Shown here: in pieces, positions 24,653 through 48,735 of the stretch
Layout of the letters: the number at the start of each line of letters is the position of its first letter
Numbering within the stretch: position 1 is the first letter of the stretch
Assembly (NCBI RefSeq): GCF_902713615.1
Contig: NC_052148.1
Location: 228,431,336 to 228,495,335 of the forward strand
Length of the DNA stretch: 64,000 nucleotides
Source: Scyliorhinus canicula
Lineage: Eukaryota
Direction of reading: 5' to 3'
Notes under the pieces: generated by a model
Databases searched by the model: none
The model's input: the letters and a program-made list of their open reading frames with translations, nothing else
Told to the model about the DNA's origin: nothing
Translations under genes and position numbers: made by a program

Positions 24653-25011
24653 TGAGGTGAGAATGGCTGCCCTTGACAATAAGACAGCATTTGACCGAGT
24701 ACGGCATCAAGGAGCCTAGCTAAACTGGAGTCAGTGGGAATCAGGGGGAAAACTCTCCGCTGGTTGAAGTCATACCTGCCACAAAGGAAGATGGTTGTGG
24801 TAGTTGGAGGTGAATCAACTCAGCTGCAGGACATCACTGCAGGAGTTCCTCAGGGTCATCTCCAAGGCCCAACCATCTTCAGCTGCTTCATCAATAACCT
24901 CCCTTCCATCATAAGTTCAGAAGTGGGAATAATTACCAATAGCTACACAACGTTCAGCACCATTCACGACTCCTCAGATACAGAATCACTCCGTGTGAAA
25001 ATGCAGCAAGA

Positions 25012-25240: not shown

Positions 25241-26211
25241 AAATGCAGCAAGACCTGCACAATATTCAGGCTTGCGGTAGGTGACAAGTGCCTGGCAATG
25301 ACCATCTCCAACAAGAGAGAATCTAACCATTGCCCCATGACATTCAATGGCATTAACATCGTTAAATTCCCCATAATCAACATCCTGTGGGTTACCATTG
25401 ATCAGAAACTGAACTGGATTAGCCATATTAATACTGTGGCTACCAGAGCTGATGCAAGACGAGGAATCCTGCAGCAAGTAAGTCATCTCCTGACTGCCTA
25501 AAGCCTGTGCACCATCTGTAAGGCACAATCAGAAGTGTAATGGAATACTCTCCACTTGCCTGGTTGCGTGCAGCACTCAAGAAGCTCGACACAACCCAGG
25601 ACAAAGCAGCCCGCTTGATTGCTACCCTTTCCACAAACATTCAAACCCTCCACCACCGATGAACAGTTTCAGCCATGTGTACCTTCTACAAGATGCACTG
25701 CAGGAACTCATCAAAGCTCCTTAGGCAGCACCATCCAAACCCACGGCCACTACCATCTAGCAGGTCAAGAGCAGCAGATACCTGGGAATACCACCATATG
25801 GCGGTTCTCTTCCAAGTCGCTCACCAACCTGACTTGGAAATATATTGTTGTTCCTTCACTGTGGCTGGGTCAAAATCCTGGAATTCCTTCCCTAACAGCC
25901 CTGTAGGTGTACCTACACCACAGGGACTGCAGCGGTTCAAGAAGGAATCTCACCACCACCTTCGGAAGGGCAACTAGGGATGGGTAATAAATGCTGGCCA
26001 ACCAGCAAAGCCCACACAGGTGAAATAATTTTTTAAATACTAATCTTTCCTTTCTTAGATATCAATATTGAACTCCATTTGCCAGATTTTTATCCATTAC
26101 TTAATTTATCATTATCCCTTTGCACCTTTTTGCTCCTAGGTGCACTATTGACTGTGCGGTGTAATTTAGTGTCTTTGATAAACTTTGATGCACAAGTACC
26201 TATTCCTTCAG

Positions 26212-26560
26212 GGGCAGCACGGTAGCATGGTGGTTAGCATAAATGCTTCACAGCTCCAGGGTCCCAGGTTCGATTCCCGGCTGGGTCACTGCCTGTGCGG
26301 AGTCTGTACGTCCTCCCCGTGTGTGCGTGGGTTTCCTCCGGGTGCTCCGGTTTCCTCCCACAGTCCAAAGATGTGCGGGTTAGGTGGATTGGCCATGCTA
26401 AATTGCCCGTAGTGTCCTAAAAAGTAAGGTTAAGGGGGGGGTTGTTGGGTTACGGGTATAGGGTGGATACGTGGGTTTGAGTAGGGTGATCATGGCTCGG
26501 CACAACATCGAGGGCCGAAGGGCCTGTTCTGTGCTGTACTGTTCTATGTTCTATGTTCTT
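26212..26560 (+). mobile_element. Young HE1-type SINE with (GTTCTAT)n tail
   Basis: Nearly identical to 55322-55667. Confidence 0.93.
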
Positions 26561-26639
26561 TTGAAAAGAACTGAGAAACTAAGGCCCCAGGGCAGATCTT
26601 TTGGGGACAGCATTGAACACGTTACGGAGAAAGCAAGAA

Positions 26640-27579: not shown

Positions 27580-27733
27580 GCAACTTCTTAAAATGGAACA
27601 GAAACTAACGTGGAGTTATTAAAAGAACCAAACCCATAAGACAGGCAAAACAGGTTGCTGTTTCATTTTGTTGAAGCTACAGTTGTGGCTGGGTGAAAAG
27701 CTGCCACACTAAAGGAGGATCACAGACGGAGAC
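27580..27733 (+). promoter_or_regulatory. Putative JCHAIN proximal promoter and 5' UTR
   Basis: Apparently non-repetitive sequence directly 5' of the ATG. Contains TAACGTGG (27606-27613), GTTATTAAAAGAA (27615-27627; TATA/MEF2-like) and an IRF-like GTTTCATTTT near 27659. The TSS cannot be determined from sequence. Confidence 0.45.
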
Positions 27734-27800
27734 ATGATGAAGACTAAACACGTGCTCGAGGTACTTGCAGCAATTCTACTTTACACAGCGCTTGCACCAG
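27734..27800 (+). CDS. JCHAIN: Immunoglobulin J chain, coding exon 1 (signal peptide MMKTKHVLEVLAAILLYTALAP)
   Basis: ATG at 27734, then 22 codons plus 1 nt, followed by donor G|GTAAAT (phase 1). Basic N-terminus and hydrophobic core typical of a signal peptide. Joins exon 2 in frame. Confidence 0.85.
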
Positions 27801-29199
27801 GTAAATTTTAATTATTATTATATTTTGCATTATGGCATATGATGAATAAATTCATGTGTGGTTAGCCCAGAAATATAGGATGAGTAGCGTCTTCGCCATA
27901 ATAATTAGACAGCATATCAGTGAACTTAGGTTAAGTGAGGATAATGATATGAGCATTTGCCGCAGATCATTACCATGGATTGAACTTTCAATGCTCATTT
28001 GTGATAGTTGTTAACTTACCCGACAATTCTTCCTTCTACATCTGAACAAGCATGCCAAAAGTACCCATCAATCCTAATGTTGAAGTATTTTTAGTTCTTA
28101 CAGCAAATATAGCTGTAGATTAAGCACTGACTATCTGTTTCTGTGTATTACAAAATGGACAACTTGCGCTTTTAATGAACTGAGCTGTTTTCATGATGTT
28201 GGTTGAGGGATGAATGGTAATCTGCAGATTGGGAGAATTCCCCTTGTTTTCATGAGAACTTTTATGTATGCTTGAGTGGGCAGGTCATTGCTCTGGTTCA
28301 ATGCCTTGTTCTGAAGAAAGTGACAGTGCTAGATTCTACAATCTTCTAAGTCATTCCAAAAGGCATGTTTTTAAAAAAAAGAATTTACTTGTTTTCTCCA
28401 TGAAGAAATTTAACAGTGAATGTTGCATTAGAGCCATGATATGTCAACGTTTACCATCGAAACTAGAGATAGTCCACTGTTGCACCTGAACAGTTTTGTC
28501 CCTGGTTTTCTCTCTCCTATGTTCAGTGTTTCCTAACAATAATTTTTGATGTTAAAACCTGCAATGTGAGGACACAGATTTCCCCAACGCATGCACAAAT
28601 TAGTAATTTCATCTATTAACTTTTATACTTCATAAGTCAGATTGTGTCTTTCAGAACCTTCTTATTACAGGCTTTCCAGCTTTCTATTTTTTCTTGACAG
28701 GAAGTGACCTGGCTCTGCTCGATACTTTAATGTGGACAGACCAGCTTCTAAAAGAATTTTCAATTTAAGAAATTGTTGAACATACATCTAACCTTTCTCG
28801 GTGGAGCAACGAGTTAGTATATTAATATGCCAATGCGTTAACTGCCAGGTTACGTCCACTGGATTATCAGCCACAAATAACAGCAAAATTGCTAGCTCAG
28901 GTTCTGCAATTAGCTGAATAGTCTATTCTTGTTTTAGGTCAATCTTTGATTAAAGTTTAAAGCTGGAAAAGATGCAGTTACCAATGAACTGTTGTAGTTA
29001 ATGATAAATTGCAGAATATGTCACAAGTGTTTGCGTTCAAATTAACTCATCTCTTTTGTAAACTAAAACGGGTCATGATACGTGCAGGATATGCATTTTT
29101 GCCTGTTTTAACTTTAACCAATAGCCTTGTCACTCTCCTGTAGTTGAATGTGATAAATATGTATTGTATTTGACTCAAAGCAAGCGAGGATTACAATGC

Positions 29200-30070
29200 A
29201 TTGGCTGAGGCTGTAAAGAGATATCAAAAGCTGTAAAAAGACATGGACAGGTTAAATGAGTGGGAAACAAGGTGGCAGATGGAGTATAATGTGAGAAGGT
29301 GTGAGGTTATCCACTTTGGTGATAAGAATAGAAAAGAAGATCTTTTTTTGAAAGTGAGAAACTTTGAGATGTTGATGTTCAGAGAGACTCGATGTACTTG
29401 TACATAAAAAACAAAAGTTAGCATGCGGGTACTGCAAGCAATTAGGAAAGGAAATAGCATGTTGGCCTTTATTGAAAGGTGATTGGCATGCAAGAATAAG
29501 AAACTTCTTACAGGACTTTGAAGAGACCACATGGAGTGCGGTGCACGGTTTTTGCTCTCCTTATCTCAAGAAGGATATACTTGCCTTGGAGGTAGTACAG
29601 TGAAGGTTCACTAGATTGGTCCCTAGGATGAGAGGGTTTCTAATGACGAGCGACTGAGTAAATTGAGCTTGTATTCTCTTGGGTTTAGAAGACTGAGAGG
29701 GGGATCTTGTTGACGCATAATTCTGAAGAGGCTTAACTGAGAGGATGTTTCCCTTGGCTGGGTAATGTAGAACACAGGAACGCCATTTCAGGAAAAGGGG
29801 TCAATCATCGTGGACTGAGATGAGGAGAAAATCTTTGACTCAGAGGTTTGTCAGTCTTAGGAATTCTCTACTCCAGACTGTTGTCAATGCTTCACCACTT
29901 CATTATTGAGTATATTCGAGGCTGGGATAAATAGATTTTCGAACTCTCAGGAATCCATGTGGTTTGGTGGTACATGGAAAAACGGAATTAAGGCAGAAGC
30001 TCACCCTCATTATGTCAAATGGCGGTGCAGCCTCGAGGGGCCACATGGTAGACTCAGCTCCAATTTTTAA
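29200..30070 (+). mobile_element. Old CR1 3' fragment in JCHAIN intron 1
   Basis: Decayed WQMEYNVRRCEVIHFG and LERLSKLSLYSL motifs. Confidence 0.85.
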
Positions 30071-30544
30071 GGTCTTATGTTTTTATAAGTGTGGCAGTAT
30101 GACTGATATTCTTTTTTACATCCCAAAACAGTATCAGCTCTGAGCTCACTCTGTACACAGATGCTAAATGGAACATTTTAGTTATAAAATATATAACTAT
30201 TATCGTGACAAGGCTATTCAAATTCAAAATTTATAACTTGCCACAATTAAAGTGATTGCAATAAAATGAAAGATTAGTACAAATGTGGCTAAATGAAGAC
30301 ATTTAAAAAAGGCTTTCAACAAAACATAAAAGTTTGTCAAGGATTATAAAATGACGGCATAATAATGAAAACAATTTCAAAAAACAGGAATATAAATAAA
30401 AACCTTTAATAAAATGCACAAAATTAAACAATAAAATTGTCATATCACATATAAACCGATTTTAAAAACTAAATTCTGCCTCTCAGCTTTAAAAAACATG
30501 CAGTTCAGTAAGTCCAAATCATAAGAAAGTATAAGAAAGTTCTA

Positions 30545-30635
30545 GAGTATTATTCGACTCGAAACGTTAACTCTTTCTCTCTCCACAGATGTTGCCAAAC
30601 CTGCTGAGCATTTCCAGCACTTTCTGTTTTTAGTT
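30545..30635. mobile_element. Short Penelope-like terminal fragment
   Basis: TCGAAACGTTAACTC...CACAGATGTTGCCAAACCTGCTGAG...CCAGCACTTTCTG. Decayed relative at 1040-1090. Confidence 0.45.
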
Positions 30636-30729
30636 TGCTTTAATAAAAAAGTATGCATGTTTCATGAAAATAAATTCAGGTCATGTTGTTCTTTTTTTAA
30701 GAAAAATTCTACATTGCTTTTTGAATGCT

Positions 30730-32430
30730 GTGCTCACTGGGGAACGGCTTCCCATTGACGCGTCCCTTGATGGGGCACTGAGTGCCATTGAACAAGGGAC
30801 CACTCTTGGAGCCCACAAGGAAGCCTACACAGGTTCGCTTTTCATGCTCTCCACATGCCTGGGTGGCATTGCCAAGCTGGCAGGAGCTGCCAAGATGCCA
30901 GGGTGGATGTGCATGGGTGCCAGGGTGGCCTGAAAGGAGGGTAGAGGGGGTATGAAGGGGGGGGGGGTGAAGGGTAAATAAGTAGGGGCCGCAGGGGGGT
31001 GGAGGGGGTGACCGCCACTGTCTTAATAACAGTAGCGGAAGGGTGCAGCCTGTAGTCAGCATTAATTGCCTTGAGGGCCTCCATTGGCAGAAGGGCACGA
31101 AGGCCGTCCATGGGACTTGCCACCACAGACTTAATTGAGGTGGAGGAGGGAAGGTAATGTCACCCTCCTGCCTGATTAAACACTCCCCCACATCACCAAA
31201 CCTGACACAGGGACAGGCATTAAATGCTTCCCTAGGTCAAAGGTAATGTTATAACATGGGTTGTTTTGGATTTAACAAATCGTGTTGTCAGGGATGGGAA
31301 CTGTTAGTTTTTCCATATCTAATCAATGACTTAGACGAGTTACAAAACAGGTTTACAGATGGCACTAAGTTAGAAGACACCGTAAATTACCAAAATGAGA
31401 ATAGGACATTAGAACAAGACATAGATCGACTAAATGACTGAGCAAAGCTGATGGAGCTCAATGTGGGGAAGTGTGATATCATCTACTTCAAATTGAAGGA
31501 AGACAAATCACAGCATTTTCCAGATGATGGGCAGAATTTAACAGAAACATTTTGAAGTTCATTTGTTTTGTAGAGTTTCCCGCTGGCTCTGCTGGCTAGT
31601 TCCCCACAACTATCCAACCACATTTGATTTTTTTGGGGGCCATGGGGAGTTTCTCACCGGTTTAGCCCACAATTAGAATTTTTTTCAGCGCTTGGGAGCT
31701 GAACTCAGAGATCAGACCGCCATTTTGAAACAGTGCCCCGATCTTTAAGTAGGCTTGTGGGTCCCCAGCAACCCACATCCATGGGCAATGACACTCCCCA
31801 CACACATGGACACTACCTCACACCCCTCCAAGCGAGGACACCCTGCTATGGGGTCCCTGGGGGTCTTCAGGCCCCCTCACACCCTCTGACAGGTCTCCCT
31901 CCTTCCTGAACCCCCACCTGTCACCCCCTCCACCCCCCTGCGGCCCCTACTTATTTACCCTTCACCCCCCCTTCATACCCCCTCTACCCTCCTTTCAGGC
32001 CACCCTGGCACCCATGCACATCCACCCTGGCATCTTGGCAGCTCCTGCCAGCTTGGCAATGCCACCCAGGCACCTTGGCAGTGCAAGATGCCAGCTGGGC
32101 AGTGCCAAGGTGCCTGTATTCCAGGGAGACGACCATGGGACCACCGTGCACTATCCCTGGGCACCCAGGGGCCGCCAATGGACCACATTTGTGCCCAGCT
32201 GCAGCCTCGCTGGGGTGGCTAGTAGATCCCGGGAGGCAGGGTAAGCTCATGTTAGTAGGTTTAAAACCTACATAAACCTACGGCCGAATGCTGTTTGTTC
32301 ACGCCCCTTTTGGGCGGGATTTTGATTCCAACGTCTCATGGGACTTGGGTATATCCCGCGAGGCGTAAAGGCTGCCGGGAGGCCCGCGGGAGGCCTCTGC
32401 CAGGATCTACCGCTCGCATTGTGTCCTCGT
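30730..32430. mobile_element. Two oppositely oriented Harbinger-type non-autonomous fragments in intron 1, sharing a near-perfect inverted segment
   Basis: 30856-31012 is the reverse complement of 31920-32072 except for G-tract length. Confidence 0.75.
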
Positions 32431-33083
32431 TGGAGCAAAACACAGCCTGTAGACCGCGTCCGACATTTGTATTTCCTCATACCAGGCAGTGTCTTCGTAA
32501 AATTACTCTATTCCACTTTCTGAAGCCTCAATATGCTTCCTATAATATGGAGCCCAATACTGCACATTAATCTAGCCGAGTCCTTCTGTTCAACATCACT
32601 GCAGTTTCCACTGTTGCGAAGGATACAATAATTGAATAATTAGTCGATTAGTTACAAGTTTATAATTTCAATCCCAATCTAGAATGTACCTTGGTGTATA
32701 TTTTGTTCACTCTGGGCACATGATAATGATGCAAATTCTGTGAAAGCAGATCCTGTCAATCTCTTGGCATTCACAAGTGGCACTTGGAGTCATCTAGAAT
32801 CTGGGTCAGCAGCTTTTCTTTTAAACTCTTTTGTTTGTGGCCCGATGCTGTCATTTCCAGTCCAATTTACTTCTGTTAACTAGCACTGGTCCTTGGTGAC
32901 TCACTTTGACAACAAGAGGTTCAGTGTGTGCATTTGATAAGAGCTCACACACAAAAACCATACCCATACCACTTAATTAATATCTAGCTGAAGTTACACC
33001 TGGGCTTCCAGTAAAGGAAGTATTAGTTCCTCATTTTAATGATAGTTGCTTCAGTGACTGAGTAACCATGTCTATCTTTACAG

Positions 33084-33204
33084 CTGACAGCCAACTTCTA
33101 GTTTCATCGAAATGTAAGCTTTTGGAGGTGAAAACCCGAATTGTTGTGACTGAATTACCTACTGGTGCAAGAGTGGAACATATCGCCAGAGATATAAAAA
33201 TCAC
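33084..33204 (+). CDS. JCHAIN: Immunoglobulin J chain, exon 2 (ADSQLLVSSKCKLLEVKTRIVVTELPTGARVEHIARDIKIT)
   Basis: Acceptor tctttacag and donor C|GTAAGT; 121 nt, phase 1 to 2. Aligns by eye with human LVDNKCKCARITSRII...IVERNIRIIV. Confidence 0.93.
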
Positions 33205-34334
33205 GTAAGTTGATGCATCGTTGATTCCCGATCATATTCACCATATGGTAAAATTAAATGGAAAGGAATATTGCTACAAACTGATGAGAGACAGTTCTGC
33301 ACTGTGAACACGAGAAAATAAATGGAAAGGCACATAACAGAGTGGAGACAATCATTTCATCATTCAGACTAAGGCAGGTAGAGCATAGTTCTCCTGTCGG
33401 GAATGCAGGAATTCTGTCACGCCAACCATCCCACCACCACTGTCCTACAAAACAATTTCATTCCCATGATGAGCATGTAGGCTAGCGAATCTGTCAAATT
33501 TCTCCTCCATTTCTACTTCGACATTTAAAAATATCAGAATTGTAAGGAATTCTATTACCGGGTCAAAAGATTCCGGTGGTAGGATAAGCAATGTGCACAG
33601 TTTTGGTGCTATTATTCCTGTAGGATGTTTCCAAAAGCAATGACAAACTGTTGCTGTAATGAACCAAAAATGGAAAACAGCAGCACGGCAATTTGGATTG
33701 CTGCACGTTGTTGAACTCACCTTGACTGGATGGACTTGTCCAGCTGGCTGGGTACGGTGCTGCATGAGATGTAGCGACAGGATGGAATACCAGACCATGG
33801 AAATCAAGCTGATTCCAGTTAATCACAAGATGAGGAAGCCATCTCTGCTTTATCCATCCCAAAAGCCCATTGTGGCACAGAATCATTTCTTAATTAATTC
33901 AAGAACTCTTTCCCCCAATATTCTCTTCAAAGTGCAATTTTACAATATTTGTTCTAATCAGTCATTGGATTACTCAGTCAATCGGTTTCAATTGCACAAT
34001 GTGTCATTAAGTTGGTTCGAAACTACCTTTATCAGTCAGATCAGAGAGAAAAACTAAAGCGGACTTGGGTTCGGTTTGAGTCATGCTACAAACATGACGA
34101 AGTTTAAAGTTACTTGAAAGGGGCAACCTTTTATTCTATTGATAATCCAGCTTGCCCTCAATTTCAGCATTGCTATTCAGCTATGTGTAAAGGACTTTAA
34201 ATGATTGATTTTATTTAACAGCATTATAAAATTTCACCTGTAATGAAACATATCCACACACAATATGATTTAGGGGCATATGTTGAGCATCCCTGGTAAT
34301 CTCGAGATGACTGTTAATTGCTCTTTCATTACAG

Positions 34335-34415
34335 AGTTCCAATGCGAACCAGAGTGAACATTTCAGATCCAACCTCCCCAATTCAGACCAAGTTTGTCTA
34401 CAAGATTTCAGATTT
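34335..34415 (+). CDS. JCHAIN: Immunoglobulin J chain, exon 3 (VPMRTRVNISDPTSPIQTKFVYKISD)
   Basis: Acceptor ctttcattacag and donor TT|GTATGA; 81 nt, phase 2 to 2. Near-diagnostic match to human VPLNNRENISDPTSPLRTRFVYHLSD, including the NIS glycosylation sequon. Confidence 0.97.
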
Positions 34416-35656
34416 GTATGATTGCTATTTTTTTTTATTACTTTCACGATGTATAATTTCAGTGTTCAAACCATCATTTCAATTCAGATTTTACAATGTG
34501 TCATGCATGTGGTGTACAAAGCAGAAACTAGTTACTTTAAATAATTTTGCCTCTTTCGAATGGATCAGATTATTCAGAAGCGACTGTATGATAGCTTTAG
34601 TGGGCCATTTTTGTGGAAGAAGAGGAGATGAAATGGAAGCAATCAAAATTAGAAATGCAAAGGATGGGGAAACATCTTTGTCTGGAAGGTGGATCAGTAA
34701 CCGAAAGGGAGGTGAATTGTGGTTGGAGCAGGTGCTGCCAACCATGCAGGAAATGACTCCAAGCTGAGAAACATTGAAGAATGACACAACATGGGGGGAG
34801 CATGGGCTCCAAGCTTTTTTGTGCGCTGCACTTTAAACCTTGGAGGATGTGACGAAAAGGAAGAAATATTGCTGTATCCACAGGATCCGGACACATACTC
34901 GGAAGGAGGTCTGAAAGGCAGTAGCAGTCAAGTAGTACTTGGTTCCCAGTATCCCTGTGATAGCGGATTGCCCCAGTGCCATGGGGGGGGTGGGGGTGCA
35001 TTTTTTAAAGCGCAAATCCGGGCACCCTTTAAAAAAGTGCCCCGATCTCTTGCCAGCTCTATCAGGCACTGCCCCACCACCGTGATGGCATGGACAACCC
35101 CTCCAACTGCAAGTCTGTTTTATCGCCAGCACTCTGTGCACAGAATGGAAAGTACCAGTCAATGAATGCATCTTCAAATGACATATCCTGCCAACTGCAC
35201 CACTAGCCTCAGACACGGTTCAATTTTCCACGCCCCCAAGACTAACCGACCAAAAATCTTTATCATTGAGGTCTCACACCTGGCATTCATATGCTCCACC
35301 TTACCCTCATACGCTTCACACTGCTGCCAGCCTCACACATGCATCTCACAGCTTGAGCACACTGCCAGCCATTCAACCATGGCAGAAACATCAACTAAAC
35401 AAATTGCACCACATTCACCGACCCACTTCCCTCTCTCTCTCTCCATAGCAGGACAAGTGGTGCAGAACTGGAGGCAACAGGAGCTAACTGGTTGGAAACA
35501 AGCCAATGGCAGAGTGCAAACCATTGAAGAAGAGTCTATCCTTATCAATAATCCTTCTCCTCAGATCCCCCCAACTCCTCATCCCACAATCTCTTCTGTT
35601 TTACAGGTTGCAGAAGCATGTACTTCTTGCTTTTCCCACATCATAACCTTAACTCT

Positions 35657-36005
35657 GGGCAGCACGGTAGCATTATGGATAGCACAATCGCTTCACAGCT
35701 CCAGGGTCCCAGGTTCGATTCCGGCTTGGGCCACTGTCTGTGTGGAGTCTGCACATCCTCCCCGTCTGTGCGTGGGTTTCCTCCGGGTGCTCCGGTTTCC
35801 TCCCACAGTTCAAAGATGTGCAGGTTAGGTGGATTGGCCATGATAAATTGCCCTTAATGTCCAAAATTGCCCTTAGTGTTGGGTGGGGTTACTGGGTTAT
35901 GGGGATAGGGTGGAGGTGTTAACCTTGGGTAGGGTGCTCTTTCCAGGAGCCGGTGCAGACTCGATGGGCCAAATGGCCTCCTTTGGCACTGTAAATTCTA
36001 TGATT
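35657..36005 (+). mobile_element. Young HE1-type SINE (intron 3)
   Basis: Same subfamily as 24296-24652. Confidence 0.93.
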
Positions 36006-36404
36006 ATCCTTCTGCCTTCCTCCTATCAAAGACCTATAAAGTGCAACCGAACCAGACAGTGGAGGATCAGCAAAACGACAATGACAATGAAGGCACATTG
36101 AGCTCACTTTCACACTCAGCCACCAGCTCAGACTCTGCTGTGTTTAAGGATAGCACAGAGGCAGTAGGAAGTCATGTGCTGCAGTGGATAGTGTCCCAGC
36201 CTCTGAACCAGAAGCTCTGGGTTCAAGTCACCCTATGGCCACGGAAGGAGCATTCTTAACGTGGCCAAACAGGTTAATTATCAACCTGCAAGCCCTTCCA
36301 AAGTGCCTACAGGGGGAGTCTCCTAGCCAGCCATGCTTGCTGCAGATTCCTTAGCTATAGCTTCTGGTGACAGGCTAGAGACCTGGACCAGGGTTCTCCG
36401 AGCC

Positions 36405-36920
36405 CGCAGTGGGTCAGAGAATCGCCGGGGTGGGCATGTAAATCCCGCCACGCCGCTCCGACACCGGGCCGCCGATTCTCCGGCGACCAGAGAATCGGCG
36501 GCAATCGTGCCAGCGCAGTCACCGCGGTGCCGGTCGGAGGCCGTTGAAAGCTGCAGCGATTCTGCGCGCTCGACGGGCCGATGCCCGCCAAGTCCCGTCG
36601 GCGTTGTTTGTGTATGGTCCTACCCGGCGGGACCTCGGCGTTCTGGCTGCGGGGGCCGTCCTGGTGGGGTAGGGGGGGCAAGTGGAACCAGCTCTGGGGA
36701 GGTTTCTCAGCTGCTCAGTTGGTAGCAAGGTCTGTCCCTTCCTGATGGTGAGGTAGTACAACACACACTGGCCAGAATTCTCCCACCATCGGGATTCTCT
36801 TTTCCCACCGGCAGCGCACCCTGCCCACGGGTTTCCCGGCCGTGTGGGGTGACTTCAATGGGAAATTCCATTGATAAGCTGCGGGGAGACAGAATCCCGC
36901 CACCAGCGAATGGTGCGCCG
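36405..36920. mobile_element. Harbinger-type MITE fragments immediately 5' of the 46-bp array
   Basis: GAGAATCGCC, GATTCTCC and CAGAATCCCGCC motifs shared with the MITE at 56558-57252. Confidence 0.7.
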
Positions 36921-39900
36921 CCCAGCAATACACTGCGCGGGAACCGGAGATTCCCGTCAAGCAGATCCCAGCAACACGCGGCGAGGGAACCGGAGATTCC
37001 CGTCCAGCAGATCCCAGCAACACGCGGCTAGGGAACCGGAGATTCCCATCCAGCAGATCCCAGCAACACGCGGCGAGGGAACCGGAGATTCCCGTCCAGC
37101 AGATCCCAGCAACACACGGCTAGGGAACCGGAGATTCCCGTCCAGCAGATCCCAGCAACACGCGGCTAGGGAACCGGAGATTCCCGTCCAGCAGATCCCA
37201 GCAACACACGGCTAGGGAACCGGAGATTCCCGTCCAGCAGATCCCAGCAACACGCGGCGAGGGAACCGGAGATTCCCGTCCAGCAGATCCCAGCAACACG
37301 CGGCTAGGGAACCGGAGATTCCCGTCCAGCAGATCCCAGCAACACGCGGCTAGGGAACCGGAGATTCCCGTCCAGCAGATCCCAGCAACACGCGGCGAGG
37401 GAACCGGAGATTCCCATCCAGCAGATCCCAGCAACACACTGCGAGGGAACCGGAGATTCCCGTCCAGCAGATCCCAGCAACACGCGGCTAGGGAACCACA
37501 GATTCCCGTCCAGCAGATCCCAGCAACACGCGGCGAGGGAACCGGAGATTCCCGTCCAGCAGATCCCAGCAACACACTGCGAGGGAACCGGAGATTCCCG
37601 TCCAGCAGATCCCAGCAACACGCGGCTAGGGAACCTGAGATTCCCGTCCAGCAGATCCCAGCAACACGCGGCTAGGGAACCGGAGATTCCCGTCCAGCAG
37701 ATCCCAGCAACACGCGGCTAGGGAACCTGAGATTCCCGTCCAGCAGATCCCAGCAACACGCGGCGAGGGAACCGGAGATTCCCATCCAGCAGATCCCAGC
37801 AACACGCGGCTAGAGAACCGGAGATTCCCGTCCAGCAGATCCCAGCAACACGCGGCTAGGGAACCGGAGATTCCCATCCAGCAGATCCCAGCAACACACT
37901 GCGAGGGAACCTGAGATTCCCGTCCAGCAGATCCCAGCAACACGCGGTGAGGGAACCGGAGATTCCCGTCCAGCAGATCCCAGCAACACGCGGCGAGGGG
38001 ACCGGAGATTCCCGTCCAGCAGATCCCAGCAACACGCGGCGAGGGAACCGGAGATTCCCATCCAGCAGATCCCAGCAACACGCGGCTAGGGAACCGGAGA
38101 TTCCCGTCCAGCAGATCCCAGCAACACACTGCGAGGGAACCGGAGATTCCCGTCCAGCAGATCCCAGCAACACACTGCGAGGGAACCGGAGATTCCCGTC
38201 CAGCAGATCCCAGCAACACGCGGCGAGGGAACCGGAGATTCCCGTCCAGCAGATCCCAGCAACACGCGGCTAGGGAACCTGAGATTCCCGTCCAGCAGAT
38301 CCCAGCAACACACGGCTAGGGAACCGGAGATTCCCGTCCAGCAGATCCCAGCAACACGCGGCTAGGGAACCGGAGATTCCCATCCAGCAGATCCCAGCAA
38401 CACACCGCTAGGGAACCGGAGATTCCCGTCCAGCAGATCCCAGCAACACGCGGCGAGGGAACCGGAGATTCCCGTCCAGCAGATCCCAGCAACACGCGGC
38501 GAGGGAACCGGAGATTCCCGTCCAGCAGATCCCAGCAACACACGGCTAGGGAACCGGAGATTCCCGTCCAGCAGATCCCAGCAACACGCGGCTAGGGAAC
38601 CGGAGATTCCCGTCCAGCAGATCCCAGCAACACGCGGCGAGGGAACCGGAGATTCCCGTCCAGCAGATCCCAGCAACACGCGGCGAGGGAACCGGAGATT
38701 CCCGTCCAGCAGATCCCAGCAACACACGGCTAGGGAACCGGAGATTCCCGTCCAGCAGATCCCAGCAACACGCGGCTAGGGAACCTGAGATTCCCGTCCA
38801 GCAGATCCCAGCAACACACTGCGAGGGAACCGGAGATTCACGTCCAGCAGATCCCAGCAACACGCGGCTAGGGAACCGGAGATTCCCGTCCAGCAGATCC
38901 CAGCAACACGCGGCTAGGGAACCGGAGATTCCCATCCAGCAGATCCCAGCAACACACTGCGAGGGAACCTGAGATTCCCGTCCAGCAGATCCCAGCAACA
39001 CGCGGCGAGGGAACCGGAGATTCCCGTCCAGCAGATCCCAGCAACACGCGGCGAGGGGACCGGAGATTCCCGTCCAGCAGATCCCAGCAACACGCGGCGA
39101 GGGAACCGGAGATTCCCATCCAGCAGATCCCAGCAACACACTGCGAGGGAACCGGAGATTCCCGTCCAGCAGATCCCAGCAACACACTGCGAGGGAACCG
39201 GAGATTCCCGTCCAGCAGATCCCAGCAACACACGGCTAGAGAACCGGAGATTCCCGTCCAGCAGATCCCAGCAACACGCGGCGAGGGAACCGGAGATTCC
39301 CGTCCAGCAGATCCCAGCAACACGCGGCGAGGGAACCGGAGATTCCCGTCCAGCAGATCCCAGCAACACACTGCGAGGGAACCGGAGATTACTGTCCGGC
39401 AGATCCCAGCAACACGCGGCTAGGGAACCGGAGATTCCCGTCCAGCAGATCCCAGCAACACGCGGCTAGGGAACCGGAGATTCCCGTCCAGCAGATCCCA
39501 GCAACACACTGCGAGGGAACCGGAGATTCCCGTCCAGCAGATCCCAGCAACACGCGGCGAGGGAACCGGAGATTCCCGTCCAGCAGATCCCAGCAACACA
39601 CGGCTAGGGAACCGGAGATTCCCGTCCAGCAGATCCCAGCAACACGCGGCTAGGGAACCGGAGATTCCCATCCAGCAGATCCCAGCAACACACCGCTAGG
39701 GAACCGGAGATTCCCGTCCAGCAGATCCCAGCAACACGCGGCGAGGGAACCGGAGATTCCCGTCCAGCAGATCCCAGCAACACGCGGCGAGGGAACCGGA
39801 GATTCCCGTCCAGCAGATCCCAGCAACACACGGCTAGGGAACCGGAGATTCCCGTCCAGCAGATCCCAGCAACACACGGCTAGGGAACCGGAGATTCTCG

Positions 39901-40048
39901 TCCAGCAGATCCCAGCAACACGCGGCTAGGGAACCGGAGATTCCCGTCCAGCAGATCCCAGCAACACGCGGCTAGGGAACCGGAGATTCCCGTCCAGCAG
40001 ATCCCAGCAACACGCGGCGAGGGAACCGGAGATTCCCGTCCAGCAGAT
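36921..40048. repeat. 46-bp minisatellite, 68 units, in JCHAIN intron 3
   Basis: Consensus CCCAGCAACACGCGGCGAGGGAACCGGAGATTCCCGTCCAGCAGAT. The span is 3128 bp, exactly 68 x 46, so there is no net indel. Confidence 0.97.
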
Positions 40049-40409
40049 CACCAGGAATCCTGACATCTACTTCGCTCAGCCGTCCAAGCATTCTTTTAAC
40101 ATCCCAATGTTCTGCTCTGTCATTCTGTGTGGCATTATGGCTTTCCGTGTCCCAGAAGGAGTTATGAACAAGGAAATGGAAATGAGGGAGGAACTCGGGA
40201 ACATTACAGCCACCAGAGAAGTGGTACTGAGCAAATTGTTGGAACTGGGGGAGTTGTTACACACCACAGTGATCAGCCAGATGGTAATTGGATCACCCTT
40301 GGTCATCCTTTGGTTTCTCATGGCAACTCGAGCGCAACTGGTACAGTGAGCTGCCATGGAGTGAAGGAATCACAAACTGCACCACGCCTCATCTCCTCCA
40401 ATCTTCAAT

Positions 40410-40742
40410 AGGGCAGCACGATAGCACAGTAGTTAGAACTGTTGCTTCACAGCTCCAGGGTCCCAGGTTCGATTCCCGGCTTGGACCACTGTCTGTGCGG
40501 AGTCTGTGTGTTTTCCCCGTGTGTGCGTGGGTTTCCTCCGGGTGCTCCGATTTCCTCCCACAGTCCAAAGATGTGCGGGTTAGGTAGATTGGCCATGCTA
40601 AATTTCCCCTTAGTGTCCAAAAAGGTTAGGCGGGGTTATGGGGTAGGGTGGAGGTGTGGGCTTAAGTAGGGTGCTCTTTCTAAGGGCTGGTGCAGATTCG
40701 ATGGGCCGAAGGGCCTCCTTCTGGACTGTAAATTCTATGGTG
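40410..40742 (+). mobile_element. HE1-type SINE
   Basis: Full head, core and tail. Confidence 0.9.
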
Positions 40743-40759
40743 TGAAAATCGCATGGACT

Positions 40760-41245
40760 TCTCTGTCAGTAAGATTGAGACTACCGTTACCATATCCCAC
40801 CCTTCCACTGATCCATCAGACTAAATTTCCTCTAAAGGTTCCCCCCTACCCAAGACTTGAACTCACATCTTTCTCAAGTTTCTATCCACTGTCCCCCCTC
40901 ATGCCCTCTCCAAGCTCGTCTTGTCCATTAGATTTACCTCCTGTCCTGTTCCTATTCTCACTAAACTGCTAACCACTGAACTTTGTCTCTTCATCCTCAT
41001 ATTAGCTGATATTACTAACTCTCTTCAGGTACTGTTGCCTCATCACCGCACACGCCAATAAAAGCCGACCCCTTTACTCCTCCACCATTCCAAACTACCG
41101 CCCTATCTCTCGTTCCTCTCCAAAGCCCCTGAACATGTTGCCATCTCCCAAATCCATTCCCATCTTTCCTGGAACTGCATGTTGAATCCCTCCAACCAGG
41201 TTTCCAGCCCTGTCACATCAATGGTGCTGACCAAAGTCACAAATG
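40760..41245 (+). mobile_element. L2 LINE RT fragment
   Basis: NYRPIS-like region; related to 63400-64000. Confidence 0.7.
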
Positions 41246-41247
41246 AG

Positions 41248-41545
41248 GACGGCACGGTGGCACAGTGGTTAGCACTGTTGCCTCACACTCCATTCCGAAC
41301 TCAGGTCACTGTCTGTGCCGATTTTGGACTTTCTCCCCGTGTCTGCGTGGGTTTCCTCCGGGTACTCCGGTTTCTTCTCATCGTCCAAAGATGTGCAGGT
41401 TAGGTGGATTGGCCATGCTAAATTGGCCCTAGGTGGAATAACAGGGATGGTGTGGATATTGGGCCTAGGTAGGGTGCTCTTTCAGAGGGTTGGTGCAGGC
41501 TCGATGGGCCGAATGGCCTCCTGCACTGTAGGGATTCTATGACAT
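41248..41545 (+). mobile_element. HE1-type SINE (older)
   Basis: Head, core and tail are recognisable, with an internal deletion. Confidence 0.85.
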
Positions 41546-41989
41546 CCTATGTGACTGCGATAAAGGCAAACATTGATTCATAAATTCATAGACCTTTACA
41601 GCATAGAAGGAGGCCATTCAGCCCATCATGTTTTTGACACGGTTGACTACACCATCCTCCTCAAATGCCTCTCCACTGTGAGGCAGCTGGGTGGAACTCT
41701 GAAGGGATGAGGTATTGACCGGGGCCAGCCAAGCGATGAAGCTTAAAGGGTATCAGATATGTGAGTGAATGCTGGCCACCGGAGAAGGTGAAGAAATGAC
41801 AGACTCCAGGGCCAGGAGCAAACGTTGTGCCAGGAAGGCCTGAAGGCAACTGGTGAGAACACCAGCCTGACTGTCTCTCTCTTTCTCTCTCTCTCACACA
41901 TCCCTCGCAGAATTCCAAGAGATTTTAGTATGGAGCCAGTGGAGCTGTCAATTCTACTCATCACAGACTCCAGCAACTAAGAGAGGCCA

Positions 41990-42800
41990 CAGCCAGGGAA
42001 AACCCAGCACCAGGAGGCCAGGGCAAGCTCAAGGGTCAGCCACGGTTCAAGGCAGATATGGGCTTGAAGTTGAAGAAGAAGGAGGGTTTTCATGGAGCTG
42101 TCGGACATGTGCCGCAGGAGACTCCGCCACACAAGGGGGACTGTGCAACACATGTGCCATCTTTTTTCAAACCTGGCATCTGATGGAGGAGGAGGAGGAC
42201 ACCAGTTTTCTGTGACTGTGAAAGTCATGGTCGCCCTCAGCTATTACACCACTGGATCATTCTAGGATTCAACGGGAATCTTTGTGGCATCTCACAGACA
42301 TCATCCCACAAATAAATCCGTGACGTGATGGATGCACTCTATGTCATGGCCTCGGTCTGCATTAATCTTGACCAGGCCCATCAGGATGAGAGGGCTGTGG
42401 TTTCTGTTACCATCGTTGGTATGCACTGGTGCAAAGGGGCCATTGATGGCATTCATGTGACACTACACACCCCCGTGGCATCAGGGAATCCCATACATTA
42501 AAAGAAAGGGGTTCCACTCCCTTAACATGCAGCTGGTGTGTGACCACCAGATGAAGATCATGTACATGTGAGCACATTTTCCAGGGAGCATGCATGATAG
42601 CTCCCTCTTTGTGCAGTCTCAAATCCCTGGAATATTCAAGGGTCATCCCAAGCTGCAGGGATGCCTAATTGTGGACGAGCAATACCCGCTGTGGCCTTGG
42701 CTGATGATGTCTGTGCGGAGGACTGAGACCGGAGCACAGTCCCATTACAACAAGGCTCACAGTGCCATCTGGTCTGTGACTGTGCAGTCTGCTGAAGATG
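41990..42800 (+). pseudogene. Harbinger DDE nuclease (HARBI1-like) pseudogene
   Basis: Motifs DMCRRRLR, LCGISQTSSH, GAIDGIHV, KGFHSLNMQLVCDHQ, FPGSMHDS and YPLWPWLM, with stops and frameshifts. Confidence 0.88.
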
Positions 42801-43479
42801 TGCTTCCACTGCCTTGAGTAGTCCAGTCGGGCCCTTCAATACAGTCCACCGAGAGTCTCCCACACATTTGTGGTACGCTGTGTCCACCATAACGTAGCGC
42901 AACAGTGGGGCAACATTCTCAATGAAGAAGACCAGACCAGGAACGTTTCCTCTAATGAGAAGGACGTCTAGGTGGGGGTGAAAGAAGAGGTCAAAGATCA
43001 GCCGGAGGTTGGAGGCCAGGCAAGGGACAAGGGTTCGCGTGGTCAGGTGCACCAGGGATGCCCTCATCACGTTCCAGTTTGCACAATAACACCATCATGT
43101 TGTCCATCAGCTCTACGACCCCCCCAACACCCCCAAGACCTTTAGGACCCCCTTCAGGACTGAGGGTGGAGGTCCATTACAAAACTATCTCATGGGGGTG
43201 CTGGGCCTGGTGCATGCTTAGCAGGAGGGTGATGACCACTCGCAGTGAGGAAAGTTCTGATACTCCTCAGCTTTTGGGTATGGCTGACTCCAGTCTGTCT
43301 GCTGCGAGCAGACTGACTCTCCGACTTATTGCCACTGAGAGTCGGGGCCACATCCCTTTGGCCTGCTGCTCTAGAGGAGGTTAGGGGGTTATGGTTCACT
43401 GCTTAATGGCAGAGTCCTTCCAGAATCTAATTGATTTTCTGTTTGAGTGGCATAACCTTTAACCTTACATTGAGGGAAA

Positions 43480-43935
43480 GTGGGAAAAGCTGTGTCCAGA
43501 TGGAGTGAGGACCTGTTCAAGTGGGGAGAGGCTCAAAGAGGGTGAGGCCTTCAGGTTGTGAATAAGGGAGGCTGAGGGGCAACCTGATAGAAGTTCATAA
43601 AATTATGAAGGGTATAGTTAGGGTGAACAGTTGGAGGTTTTTTCCCAGTGCGAAAATGACAATTACAAGGGGTCACAAGTTCAAGGTGAGGGGGTAAAGG
43701 TTCAGTTCAGTGGGGATGTGCGGGGTAAGTTTTTTTACACAGAGGGTGGTGGTGGCCTGGAATGCACTGCCAAGTGACGTGGTTGAGGCAGATACATTAG
43801 CGACCTTTAAGACTTACCTGGATAGGCACATGAACAGACGGGATATAGAAGGATACAGACGGTTAGTCTAGATAAGATACGTGATTGGTGGGGCTTGGAG
43901 GGCCGAAGGGCCTGTTCCTGTGCTGCACTGTTCTT
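43480..43935 (+). mobile_element. CR1 3' fragment inserted in the Harbinger element
   Basis: TRGHKFKVRG region and tail GGGCCGAAGGGCCTGTTCCTGTGCTG. Confidence 0.88.
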
Positions 43936-43939
43936 TCTT

Positions 43940-45620
43940 CATTGTACCTCTGGGTGTATTCCCAGGCTGCACATCAGAAGTGGAGGCGGCCTGCTCCTTT
44001 TCATACCTGTTGCCTGAAATGTTCTTGGTGGCTGTCCTGTGGAGGGCCTGGAGCTGGAGGGACCCAGCCCACTTTCGGGTGACACTGATGTTTCCGCGTC
44101 ACCCTGTTCTGCCTGCTTCCCCCCGAGAAGCACAGGTATCAGGAAAGGGGGGGGGGGGGGATCAGAAGGCATGGTCACTCCCTGGGTCTCTTGGGCGGAA
44201 GGTCCAGCACATCCTCCTCCCTCTGGGTGCTCGCGGGCCACTAGGTAACTCTACTGGATGGAGGGGCAGCTGGAGTGAGCTCCAGAGCCTCAACGCCAGT
44301 CCTGGAGGCCCCCAGTGTCTGAACAATACGATTGAAGCCCTCAACCAAGGTCCTCGGGAACTGGGGCACGCATTGCCCCAGGCTTTCCACTGCAGATGCC
44401 ACCCTTGCCATGTTGACCTGGGTGCCAAGCATTGCCGGCAACATTCCTATGACTGAAAGCTTTGGGACTCCTCCATTCCTCCTTGTAGTTGGAGGAATGT
44501 CGCTGACAAACCCTTCCTGGTATTCCTGGCTCTGTCTTTGCATCTATAACAGCTGAGGGATGAACGTGTCCACAGCACAGCACCTGGCTGGGGCTCGGCT
44601 GAGTCCTGGGATCCAGCAGACCTCCGACTGCCTGATCTCTGGGACGTTCCTGTCTCCAGCTGATCTGCATCAGAGGCTGTGTGGTGCTCACCAGAAAGTG
44701 ACCCAGAAGCCTGTCTGCTACGTTCTCCCACCAAGGTGTGTGTCTGCACTGGTGAATGGTGAAGGTGATAGCTGTGACATATCATCCACCTCCTCCTCAG
44801 ACATCTCCAAGATGCTGTCAAGGGTAGAAGGGGGCACTGTTATTGACAACAGCGGCTCATTGGTTGATGTTCCTGCAAGGCAGGGGACATAGTTTTAATA
44901 CATGGCCTTGTCAAAGTTTTGGACAACAAATACCTCACTTGAGACTGGTCAATGAATGAGGGTGCAATGGCTCCTCACCTTCCTGTCACAGGCCAACCTT
45001 GTTCTCTGTGCACGCCCACTCCTAGTTCTGCACTGTGAGTTCCATGGCCCTCTCTTCAAAAGGGGTTATGATCCTTAGTTTGGGCATTTCACCGCCTGTC
45101 AACTCTCTCCCTCTCTCTCTCTGGTTGTGGATAATCTCCTCCTGCGGGAACAGAAAAGGGGATAATGTGAGCAGAATGCCTGGCGGATCAGAGGTCGTGA
45201 ATAACTAGCATATGTGGGCACTGTGCTTAAGTAAGGGAGGGCTCTTATGAGAAGTGCCAGGTGGTTTGAGGATGATACTGGGAGATCGGGTGCTGAGGAC
45301 CTGCAAGGTGGTATCACGTGGGTTCAAGGGGACATTTTGGGGATGATGGAAGGATTGAATGCCACAGACAGACAGGGAGCACTTACCCTTACAGATCGCA
45401 GTAGGTCATTCATTTTTTTCCTACGTTAAATCCTTTTCCTCTTGGTCATACCACTGGCACTAACCAGTGCTGCCACTGTCTCCCAGGTGGGATTGGTGCC
45501 CTTGCTGGAGGGCCTCATGCCAACACGCGGGAAGATTGTGAACCGCCTCTCCTCCCCAGCATCCAGCAATCGAGTCAGAACCTCTTCCAAGAACCTGGGA
45601 GCTGGTCTTCTATCTGCCAT
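43940..45620 (-). pseudogene. Harbinger Myb/SANT-like DNA-binding protein pseudogene with spliceosomal introns
   Basis: MADRRPAPRFLEEVLTRLLD...WETVAALVSA...(stop)RRKKMNDLLRSVR, then donor GTAAGT at 45386-45381. Acceptor near 45145; second donor GTGAGG near 44980. Confidence 0.85.
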
Positions 45621-45744
45621 CCTCCTCGGTTAAATGGGAGTGAGTGCTGTGGAGTCGGTTAAATACAGCGCCCCCTTGATTAAATTGCTCAGATGACCCC
45701 CACGCCGAGGAGGGCGAATCAGACACTTCACGCCTCATGTGAAA

Positions 45745-45930
45745 AAAAATTAAAATGAAAATCGTTTATTGTCACAAGTAGGCTTCAAATGAAGTTACTG
45801 TGAAAAGCCCCTAGTCGCCACATTCCGGCGCCTGTTTGGGGAGGCTGGTACGGGAATTGAACCGTGCTGCTGGCCTGCCTTGGCCTGCTTTCACAGCCAG
45901 CGATTTAGCCCTGTGTGCTAAACCAGCCCC
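45745..45930 (-). mobile_element. tRNA-derived SINE (GGGGCTGGTTTAGCAC family)
   Basis: Near-identical to 7508-7709. Confidence 0.88.
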
Positions 45931-46520
45931 TGGAGGGTGGAGGAACGTAATCTCACAAACTGCCTAAAGGTGGCGCTCTGGACCACCCCACTGGTGCTGG
46001 TGGAATTCGCCCCCTGTTTTCAGTGCCAAAAATGACACTTTGGCATATTTCGGAAATTTACGGCCATTAACTTTGTCGTTCAGAATTTCACCAGAGTCAG
46101 AAGTGCTGTGAATAGGATTTTCAGCCACGCTTATCCCAGCGTTGACCCATATCCTCTATTAGCTGAAGAGCTACATTTCGTGAGAATATCTTGGTAGATT
46201 CTCTGGAACCACTTTCCTACCAGCACTGTGATTGACTGTCTTTAGGATGTTAGTATTAATCCCCCACCTCTTAGCTTGTACCATTAGTTTGACTGCATCA
46301 CAGATTGTCCTCTTGAATTCACTGTGAATGGATATTAGTTACATGCAAAAGAGTTCCTTGTCAATTTGAACATGCTAAATGAGTTGAAAAAATTTATTCT
46401 AAAGTCATTCAACTGCATGTTAGATAAAGCTGTTTGTTGAACATCTAATGACTTTCAGATATCAGTGTTATGTATTCAATGGTAATTATATCTTTGATAA
46501 TCTTTGACATCTTTCTACAG

Positions 46521-46722
46521 CTGCAAGAATTGCACCCCAAAGTCATCTCCACTCGTACCTCAGTGCAACCCCAAACCTCCACCCATTGATGAATGTTACG
46601 CCCATGAAAACAAAACATGCGGGCACACCCAAAGACGTGAAGTTAGTTTATGGCATCAAACCCCTACAGTGGCACCTGTTGAAACGACAGTAGATTTGTC
46701 ATCGATATCAGATGCTCCATAG
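46521..46722 (+). CDS. JCHAIN: Immunoglobulin J chain, exon 4 (CKNCTPKSSPLVPQCNPKPPPIDECYAHENKTCGHTQRREVSLWHQTPTVAPVETTVDLSSISDAP*)
   Basis: Acceptor ctttctacag; TT|C gives Phe, then CKNC (human LCKKC). CY-x6-C spacing matches human CYTYDRNKC, and a VET motif lies near the C-terminus. TAG at 46720-46722. Total CDS is 471 nt, or 156 aa. Confidence 0.92.
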
Positions 46723-46820
46723 ATTGTTCTAAAGATTATACAGATAATTGCCCCTGTTTCTTTACGGCATTTTAGCTTTGTCTTTTAGCCATACTGGCCT
46801 TTTACCTTCTTGGAACAGAT

Positions 46821-46853
46821 AATAAAATTCTTTGCTGCTTGCTTCATAATAAA
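46821..46853 (+). terminator. Candidate JCHAIN polyadenylation signals (two AATAAA)
   Basis: AATAAA at 46821-46826 and 46848-46853, 100-130 nt after the stop codon, followed by GT/T-rich sequence. Confidence 0.65.
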
Positions 46854-46989
46854 CACTGCTCTCCATATTATGCATCATTTGTAAATGTGTCATGTTTTGC
46901 GGCAAAATTGAGACAATGGGAAAACACGGCATGCTGGCACTCAATACCCATTTTCTAAAAGTGAACACTGGAACAGTTGAAATATTTAA

Positions 46990-47042: not shown

Positions 47043-48735
47043 AGGGGATCCACCGGCCCTGTCGACCCTCACTGTGGCAGAGCAGAGGGCCCTGGACGTG
47101 GTCGGTGGCCTGGAGGAAAGGGAGGCCGCAGGTGTAGAGTTCAGCCACGGGCGAGGAAGTGAGATCCTGTGGAGCTGTAGTGCCCCATGCCATGTGTGTC
47201 AACCCCAACCCCAACATCACCCTTGCCCTTTCCCCACACCACCCCATCCCACCCTCACCTTCAGCATTACCCTCACCCCCACACCACCCTCACCCCATAC
47301 CACCTTCAGCCTCACCCCCACCCCATACCACCCTCACCCCGACCCCCACACCACCCTCACCCCCACCATCCCCCCACCCTGCGGTCTAGTCATGCATCGT
47401 GTCTTGTGTCTGCTGGTGATGGGGCGGGTCCATCCGTTGTTCCCCCGTCCCCAGCCAGTGCCACAGCTGGAGCACCCCCACCCCACCGTGAGCGAAGCAC
47501 TGACGAGGAGAGCAGCTCCGTCAGCAGCCCTCGACCCGAGACTCAGAGACACCTCGGTTGGGCATTTTAGTGGAGGCTCCTGGGACACCACCTGGTGCTC
47601 ACCACCCAGCTCCACATCAGGTGGAGGTAGGAACGGCCAAGGGGGCGGACTGTCAGAGGGCAGGCCGAATCCAGGGACTAGCAGCCGTCCAGATGGCTTT
47701 TGGGCTTCTGGAACGGACAGTCCCATCGACTGCGGAGATGCAGTCGCAGAGCCAAGGACTGCATGAGGGGTTGTCAGTGAGCAGCCAGTACCCGCCAACG
47801 CAGGTTCAGGAGTCCAATCACATGCAGGGGCAGGAGATGGTGCCAACCATGGGAGCCACCCAGGACAACATAGCACAGGTGGCAAGGATTTTGGCTATGG
47901 ATCGGCATTACCAAGGCCTGGGGCATTCAGTGCAGGCGCTGGTCAAGGCCCAAGATGCGGTGTCCGTGCCCCTGGCCAGTTTCCCTGTGAACCTGGAGAC
48001 AATCAGAGCGTCACGTGCACGTTGGCCCTCCAGCATACACGTCGTGGGGCCTCACGGGCATACCTGAGCCCCATGTCCTGCCCTCCCTCATCCTCCTTGT
48101 CGGATGAGGCCTGCCGTTCATCCTCCTCCTCCTCCAGCACGTCGCCCCTCTGCCGTGATGTTGTGGAGGACACAGCAGGCCACCACGATGCAGGCGACCC
48201 TCTCAGCATCACACTGGAGGATCCCTCCAGAGTGGTCCAAGCACCTGAACCACATCTTCAGGACCCCGAAGCACCGCTCGATCATGCCCCTGGTTGCTGC
48301 ATGGGCGTCATTCTGGCGGGCATGTTGGCAATGGCGGCGAACCTCGATGCCCATGCAGCATCCTGGTGGGCTCGGTCCACCGTGAAATGGAGGTACCGAG
48401 CTGACTGGACATATAGGGTCTCCATGACGGAGCGGATACAACTGTGAGACCCCGGACAGGTTGCCAATCGGTGCCTGGACGTGCCCCGTCGCGTAAAACC
48501 CACCGGAACCAAGTGCTCTCCCCCAGACACCCGCTATGCCAAGTGTGCCATGATCTGGCTGATATGTCGCACTGTCTCCCTGCTCAGCCGGAGTCTTCAT
48601 CGTCATGCCCGGTCCAGCAGGCGCTGCCGGCACACACGAGGCCTCATGCGGCACTCCTTTGCACCTCCTCCTCTTCGGCCTGTTGGGTGGCCAGCTCTCC
48701 TTCCTGGGTGGCTGCCTTCTGTTGCTCTGGGGCTC

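Follow-up and report, generated by a model that had tools for sequence, protein, structure and literature searches.

JCHAIN, the gene for the immunoglobulin J chain, has been proposed to originate from CXCL chemokine genes, and cartilaginous fish, nine of which were analysed by Kawasaki et al. (2024, PMC10801876), are the oldest lineage with the gene; their J chains are neutral or basic. According to the same study, all JCHAIN genes have four exons, introns in phases 1-2-2 and the boundary between signal peptide and mature protein at the junction of exons 1 and 2, as in CXCL genes. The CXC motif was used as a further feature shared by JCHAIN and CXCL, and JCHAIN was linked to the CXCL chemokine cluster (PMC10801876). 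In the nurse shark, as outlined in a review passage (PMC4279169), the production of pentameric immunoglobulin M (IgM) depends on the J chain, and the poorly conserved C-terminus of the protein is held to argue against mucosal transport. Here we report on JCHAIN of the small-spotted catshark, Scyliorhinus canicula, found in a stretch of 64,000 nucleotides of contig NC_052148.1 (RefSeq assembly GCF_902713615.1, positions 228,431,336 to 228,495,335 of the forward strand). This whole stretch is referred to as the window, and positions are counted from its first letter. The background given for the gene in the initial annotation of the window (its four-exon structure, the proposal of a CXCL ancestry and the rank of cartilaginous fish as the oldest lineage to have it) is as stated by Kawasaki et al.

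The evidence leaves us highly confident that the catshark JCHAIN is an ordinary, intact and strongly transcribed gene, whose four exons are spread across 19 kb (Table 1). Spliced by script, its coding sequence (CDS) of 471 nt runs from the ATG at 27734 to the TAG at 46720-46722 and translates without interruption into 156 aa. The intron phases are 1, 2 and 2, and every acceptor AG is preceded by a pyrimidine-rich tract. Only 2.5% of the gene span is coding, and the window contains no runs of N. The four exons, GT-AG junctions, phases, 156-aa open reading frame (ORF) and intron lengths of the initial annotation were all reproduced exactly, and the NISDPTSP block that it had announced in the product was located in exon 3. 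It had also remarked that the gene escaped the ORF track. Indeed, the list of open frames holds only fragments of it, 34318-34767, which is exon 3 read through into the intron, and 46504-46722, which covers exon 4. This is expected for any spliced eukaryotic gene, because a prokaryote-style ORF finder is blind to splicing. Exon 1 was matched at 27734-27805 by tblastn searches with other shark J chains. Searches of the window with shark J chains retrieved these four exons only and no second copy.

RNA contigs were mapped onto positions 28460-34459, using three runs from separate studies (Logan contigs; X1, X2 and X3) and one run of raw reads (X22). The joint 33204/34335 (GT..AG, skipping 1130 bp) was read directly in two X1 contigs, at a depth of ~6050, and in a 656-nt contig of X3; X2 contains it as well, with a single base altered. 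The spliced X2 contig has A for C at 33204, the last base of exon 2, which turns codon 63 from ACA (Thr) into AAA (Lys). As Ile occupies this residue in most other sharks, the site is variable and the A probably represents a polymorphism. The contigs of all three runs carry, ahead of exon 2, the 30-mer 27768-27797 and, beyond 34415, the 30-mer 46521-46550, each of which occurs once in the window; the CAG that follows the 27768-27797 string is found both where exon 1 ends and at the acceptor of intron 1. All three junctions placed by the initial annotation (27800/33084, 33204/34335 and 34415/46521) are therefore supported by contigs from three studies, one by a direct joint and two by uniquely mapping loose ends.

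Depth over the exons was ~7500-8000 in X1, 660-1010 in X2 and 19-29 in X3 (7971, 1010 and 29, respectively, for exon 2). Over the introns it was 0-36, mostly below 6, in the contigs of the same runs. A pattern confined to exons indicates spliced RNA and not genomic DNA, and the gene is very highly transcribed in some samples of the species. About 19 small RNA-type runs contained only 6-18% of the sampled words of a 1.5-kb stretch around exons 2-3, as expected of exon-only transcripts; one run with 72% of these words is probably genomic. Exon 4 and the 3' untranslated region (UTR) were represented by 0.73-0.87 of their sampled words in 14 RNA-type runs from five studies. The ends of the transcript were estimated from the contigs that span the gene. 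Those of X3 and X2 carry 105 and 104 letters before 33081 which, with the three shared letters CAG, put their 5' ends at 27693 and 27694, assuming colinearity with the genome, as the base-by-base match covers the last 30 letters only. Downstream, the X3 contig continues for 346 letters after 34415 and would end at 46866, ~18 nt past the AATAAA at 46848. Its 656 nt are accounted for by the CDS (471 nt) flanked by a 5' UTR of 41 nt and a 3' UTR of 144 nt.

Membership in the J chain family was assessed with Pfam and the PDB. The whole 156-aa protein matched the Pfam family Ig_J_chain (PF15097; gathering cut-off 27 bits) with 70.3 bits (E 2e-19; residues 24-125 aligned to positions 3-108 of the 134-position profile). 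Exon 3 by itself (26 aa) reached 35.8 bits, so that the J-chain domain is recognized significantly in both; no Pfam match was obtained with the 39 aa of exon 2 or the 66 aa of exon 4, searched singly. J chains of solved IgM/IgA structures in the PDB were matched by exon 3 at E ~1e-7 and by the whole protein at E 9e-17 to 3e-13, the part encoded by exon 2 falling on their N-terminus. When the exon 4 translation was compared with protein representatives, it aligned with a basking shark protein (P0002) at 71% identity, at the J chain C-terminus, and P0002 used as a query retrieved 14 elasmobranch proteins named "immunoglobulin J chain" or "immunoglobulin J chain-like". Six other exon 4 matches, to long proteins with up to 44 short stretches of 28-38% identity, were discounted as probably repetitive or of low complexity.

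The spliced translation is identical at 156/156 residues to the NCBI protein "immunoglobulin J chain-like [Scyliorhinus canicula]" (P0011). The gene of this protein has an 18,989-bp range on a 277-Mb chromosome of GCA_902713615.2, which corresponds to 27734-46722, and its CDS range is identical to ours. It is thus the same gene without any difference, and the present analysis adds only the independent confirmation of its junctions by RNA. No other called genes lie within 10 kb on either side of the annotated JCHAIN. The gene is already annotated publicly, in RefSeq, and known, and the catshark provides one more example of an established gene rather than a new type; our literature search retrieved no paper specifically on the catshark J chain.

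The relationships of the protein were examined in a maximum-likelihood tree (IQ-TREE) of 20 J chains, with one sequence per species. The tree was congruent with the species tree, with support of at least 95/80 for key clades: chondrichthyans 100/100, galeomorphs 100/99, Mustelus + Scyliorhinus 98/95 and the Scyliorhinus pair 100/98. The orthologue of Scyliorhinus torazame is 89% identical and its gene spans 20.6 kb. Conservation extends over ~13 species of chondrichthyans; an alignment of 12 elasmobranch sequences has 39 invariant columns, and searches of protein databases retrieved a single J chain protein of S. canicula. The identification of the gene as JCHAIN, already proposed from the sequence, is accordingly backed by identity with P0011, by the Pfam and PDB matches and by its grouping with shark J chains in the tree.

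Table 1. Features of the catshark JCHAIN locus and residue equivalences of its product. Positions refer to the window unless given as residues of the 156-aa protein.
Feature	Position	Strand	Description
5' UTR, minimal extent	27693..27733	+	transcript start at or upstream of ~27693
Exon 1, coding part	27734..27800	+	67 nt; carries the ATG and encodes the signal peptide; phase-1 donor G|GTAAAT
Intron 1	27801..33083	+	5283 bp, GT..AG
Exon 2	33084..33204	+	121 nt; start of mature protein, CXC remnant (C-K-L), first beta strands
Intron 2	33205..34334	+	1130 bp, GT..AG
Exon 3	34335..34415	+	81 nt; most conserved block; sequon N71-I-S in NISDPTSP
Intron 3	34416..46520	+	12105 bp, GT..AG; holds the tandem array and three dispersed-repeat copies
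Exon 4, coding part	46521..46722	+	202 nt; divergent Cys-/Pro-rich C-terminal half; ends in shark-specific ...SDAP, TAG
3' UTR	46723..46866	+	~144 nt; AATAAA at 46821 and 46848; inferred poly(A) site near 46866
Dispersed ~350-bp repeat, example copies	13935-14299, 24296-24655, 26200-26562, 35648-36008, 40406-40741, 41247-41554, 55323-55668
Cysteine	residue C33		human Cys13
Leucine	residue L35		position of human Cys15
Cysteine	residue C91		human Cys69
Cysteine	residue C94		human Cys72
Cysteine	residue C105		approximately human Cys92
Cysteine	residue C115		human Cys101
Cysteine	residue C123		human Cys109
No catshark counterpart			human Cys134

The protein is predicted to begin with a signal peptide of ~23 residues, encoded by exon 1, and the mature chain of ~133 residues would start at about D24, at the boundary of exons 1 and 2. 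Several features agree with the signal peptide of the initial annotation: the exon 1 product contains the hydrophobic stretch LAAILLYTALAPA and ends in A-P-A at positions -3 to -1, a helix is modelled at residues 5-19, and the Pfam and PDB alignments start at residues 21-24. The mature chain is basic, with a computed isoelectric point (pI) of 8.58. It has six cysteines (C33, C91, C94, C105, C115 and C123) and three N-glycosylation sequons: N71-I-S, which is conserved and aligns to the human NISDPTSP block, N93 and N120. An AlphaFold2 monomer was built from a 43-sequence alignment (mean predicted local distance difference test score, pLDDT, 57.8). The model was confident only for three beta strands within residues 25-62, and its C-terminal third had a pLDDT below 50; low confidence is expected there of a chain that folds onto immunoglobulin tailpieces. 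A Foldseek search of the PDB returned J chains as all of its top 15 matches, which at template modelling (TM) scores of 0.3-0.4 is weak corroboration only.

We infer the function of the catshark protein from its orthology, together with published work on the nurse shark (PMC4279169, PMC10801876). As in the nurse shark, it would be secreted by plasma cells and built into polymeric (pentameric, 19S) IgM, for whose polymerization it would be needed. The beta-strand core would pack against the tailpieces of the heavy chains, and C91, the equivalent of Cys69, would form the disulfide that closes the pentamer. A role in mucosal transport is unlikely to judge from the C-terminal half, since it lacks the features with which tetrapod J chains bind secretory component and pIgR.

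Cysteines were mapped by alignment with solved and tetrapod J chains, and their distribution among cartilaginous fish was taken from an alignment of their J chains (P0002, P0008-P0018 and P0021) with tetrapod ones. Six cysteines of the mammalian set of eight, which includes both tailpiece-linking residues, Cys15 and Cys69, are present in the catshark (Table 1). The same six-cysteine pattern was found in 6/6 galeomorphs sampled (two Scyliorhinus, Mustelus, Cetorhinus, Rhincodon and Hemiscyllium). Outside this group, a C-K-C motif and a C-terminal ...NPEC cysteine are retained in the squalomorphs Heptranchias and Pristiophorus and in the four batoids with full-length sequences; this ...NPEC cysteine plausibly corresponds to the tetrapod ...PE-SC cysteine. 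The chimaera Callorhinchus retains C-K-C, and no cysteine of its J chain aligned at the ...NPEC position. On these alignments, the loss of both cysteines looks like a galeomorph synapomorphy. If the pairs Cys13-Cys101 and Cys72-Cys92 are kept, C91 and C123 would remain unpaired. The orphaned C123 of galeomorphs, which have lost Cys15 and Cys134 jointly, may then be a second tailpiece-linking cysteine, with an attachment geometry unlike that of squalomorphs, rays and tetrapods; we offer this suggestion tentatively and regard it as rather unlikely. No description of the clade-wide pairing of the two losses was found in the J chain literature searched. The galeomorph loss could serve as a natural experiment on the tethering of the J chain to IgM.

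Several observations weigh against reading the locus as an ordinary, intact JCHAIN. The junctions are supported by assembled contigs and not by counted reads, and the raw-read run X22 placed only two partial reads. A frameshifting 1-nt deletion makes up about a third of the local depth in X1. Expression in plasma cells or spleen is assumed, the identities of runs and samples being coded, and the presence of the protein is likewise assumed. The C-terminal 50 residues have neither a Pfam profile match nor a confident fold. Lastly, equivalents of Cys134 and of Cys15, one of the two tailpiece-linking cysteines, are absent, so that covalent attachment cannot be exactly as in mammals. The eight-cysteine set defines the J chains of tetrapods and not the whole family, because galeomorphs share the six-cysteine pattern and missing cysteines had already been reported for the nurse shark J chain, in a passage of PMC3743840. 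The lost Cys15 equivalent would also fit a J-chain-like paralogue that has drifted away from the joining of IgM towards a chemokine-like or otherwise immunoglobulin-independent secreted role, with the true JCHAIN located elsewhere. This possibility gains from the basic, chemokine-like charge of the protein, from its NCBI name "J chain-like", and from the mention by Kawasaki et al. (PMC10801876) of one or more jchain genes and of expression outside plasma cells in elasmobranchs. A paralogue is nonetheless improbable given the single J chain protein in the databases for the species, a tree that has a single sequence for each species and branches like the species tree, and cysteines arranged as in all other galeomorphs sampled. 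Moreover, no IL8/chemokine family was matched in Pfam at E <= 1, and the nurse shark, itself a galeomorph, depends on J chain expression for its pentameric IgM, as the review passage cited above has it (PMC4279169).

The deletion in X1 raises the question of whether the gene is a decaying or polymorphic pseudogene, for which the open frame of the reference would be unrepresentative. It is seen in a 59-nt contig that is one base short at 33162, in exon 2, with a depth of 2228, compared with 4617 along the intact 60-nt path. Possible sources are a null allele in the heterozygous state, its transcript perhaps lowered through nonsense-mediated decay, the pooling of samples, another locus of near-identical sequence, and an artefact of assembly. 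We consider a pseudogene very improbable, as the intact path dominates X1, neither X2 nor X3 has a deletion of this kind listed, and the frame of the reference is intact and agrees with the annotated protein at every residue. The very high expression and the conservation of the sequence across chondrichthyans speak against decay as well. An incomplete gene model, with extra exons or other 5' or 3' ends and a product other than 156 aa, is hardly to be credited. Only 30 letters per loose end were compared, which leaves the outer parts of the contigs, the 5' UTR included, unseen. However, the length of the X3 contig is the exact sum of the two UTRs and the CDS, with a polyadenylation signal at 46848, the alignment with other shark J chains extends to both termini of the protein, and the NCBI CDS range is the same. 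An ordinary, intact JCHAIN thus remains our preferred reading.

Intron 3 contains a tandem array, at 36921-40054, in which a 46-bp unit is repeated 68.1 times (95% matches). A predicted NF-kB site, GGGAATCTCC, in agreement with the consensus GGGRNNYYCC, is present on the minus strand of 58 units. Statistically, the 58 sites count as one event, because a single unit was amplified; the chance of this one motif per 46-bp unit is estimated at ~1%. A dispersed ~350-bp repeat resembling short interspersed nuclear elements (SINEs) occurs ~15 times in the window, including three times in intron 3. Its spurious ORFs all encode a similar ...SQLQGPRFDSGLGHCLCGVC... peptide and would clutter any ORF track. 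Two minisatellites were observed elsewhere in the window, one at 5765-6599 (21-bp unit, 39.8 copies, 87% matches) and the other at 48742-50349 (15-bp unit, 107.5 copies, 81% matches), where a spurious open frame of 725 aa is found at 48417-50591.

Taken alone, the catshark gene carries little weight, as it is annotated, and work published in 2024 had already described the JCHAIN of cartilaginous fish in its gene structure, basic charge and descent from chemokines. Its value is practical: the exon coordinates are fixed with RNA support. JCHAIN can therefore act as the anchor for the rest of the window that the initial annotation took it to be, and it is a reliable one for judging the cysteine pattern and the intronic tandem array.

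Compared with CXCL genes, the catshark JCHAIN has the same four exons, the same 1-2-2 phases and the same placement of the signal/mature boundary at intron 1, and both encode small basic secreted proteins with a three-strand beta core. They differ in that the catshark protein has no match to the Pfam family IL8 (PF00048), Ig_J_chain being the sole family retrieved at E <= 1. The CXC motif has decayed to C-K-L in the catshark and in other galeomorph sharks, so that one of the features tying JCHAIN to CXCL genes is absent. A six-frame regular-expression scan of the window for C-x-C...C exons retrieved only repeat-derived ORFs and no chemokine-like exon. The likeness of the catshark J chain to CXCL does not go beyond gene structure, and it is from gene structure that Kawasaki et al. 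argue.

The nurse shark J chain is likewise that of a galeomorph and, according to passages of the work citing Hohman et al. 2003 (PMC10801876, PMC4279169), shares with the catshark protein a non-acidic character and a conserved block at the N-glycosylation site. Passages of PMC3743840 and PMC4279169 add a poorly conserved C-terminal half and the lack of several of the eight mammalian cysteines. Rhincodon and Hemiscyllium, close relatives of the nurse shark, have J chains 61-63% identical to that of the catshark; the genus Scyliorhinus differs from other sharks by a further deletion of ~18-20 residues in exon 4. Identity with human and other tetrapod J chains is ~31-38%. Common to the catshark and to tetrapod J chains (PDB 6kxs_J, 8bpe_J and 9ec7_J) are the four exons in phases 1-2-2, a signal peptide encoded by exon 1, a beta core at the N-terminus, the sequon in the NISDPTSP block and the cysteines equivalent to Cys13, 69, 72, 92, 101 and 109. 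Unlike the catshark protein, which is basic (pI 8.6) and without equivalents of Cys15 and Cys134, the human and other tetrapod chains are acidic. The two also part at the C-terminus, where profile positions 109-134 of Ig_J_chain are unmatched by the catshark protein: it ends in a Pro-rich, shark-specific extension closing with SDAP, whereas tetrapod J chains have the ...CYPD hairpin.

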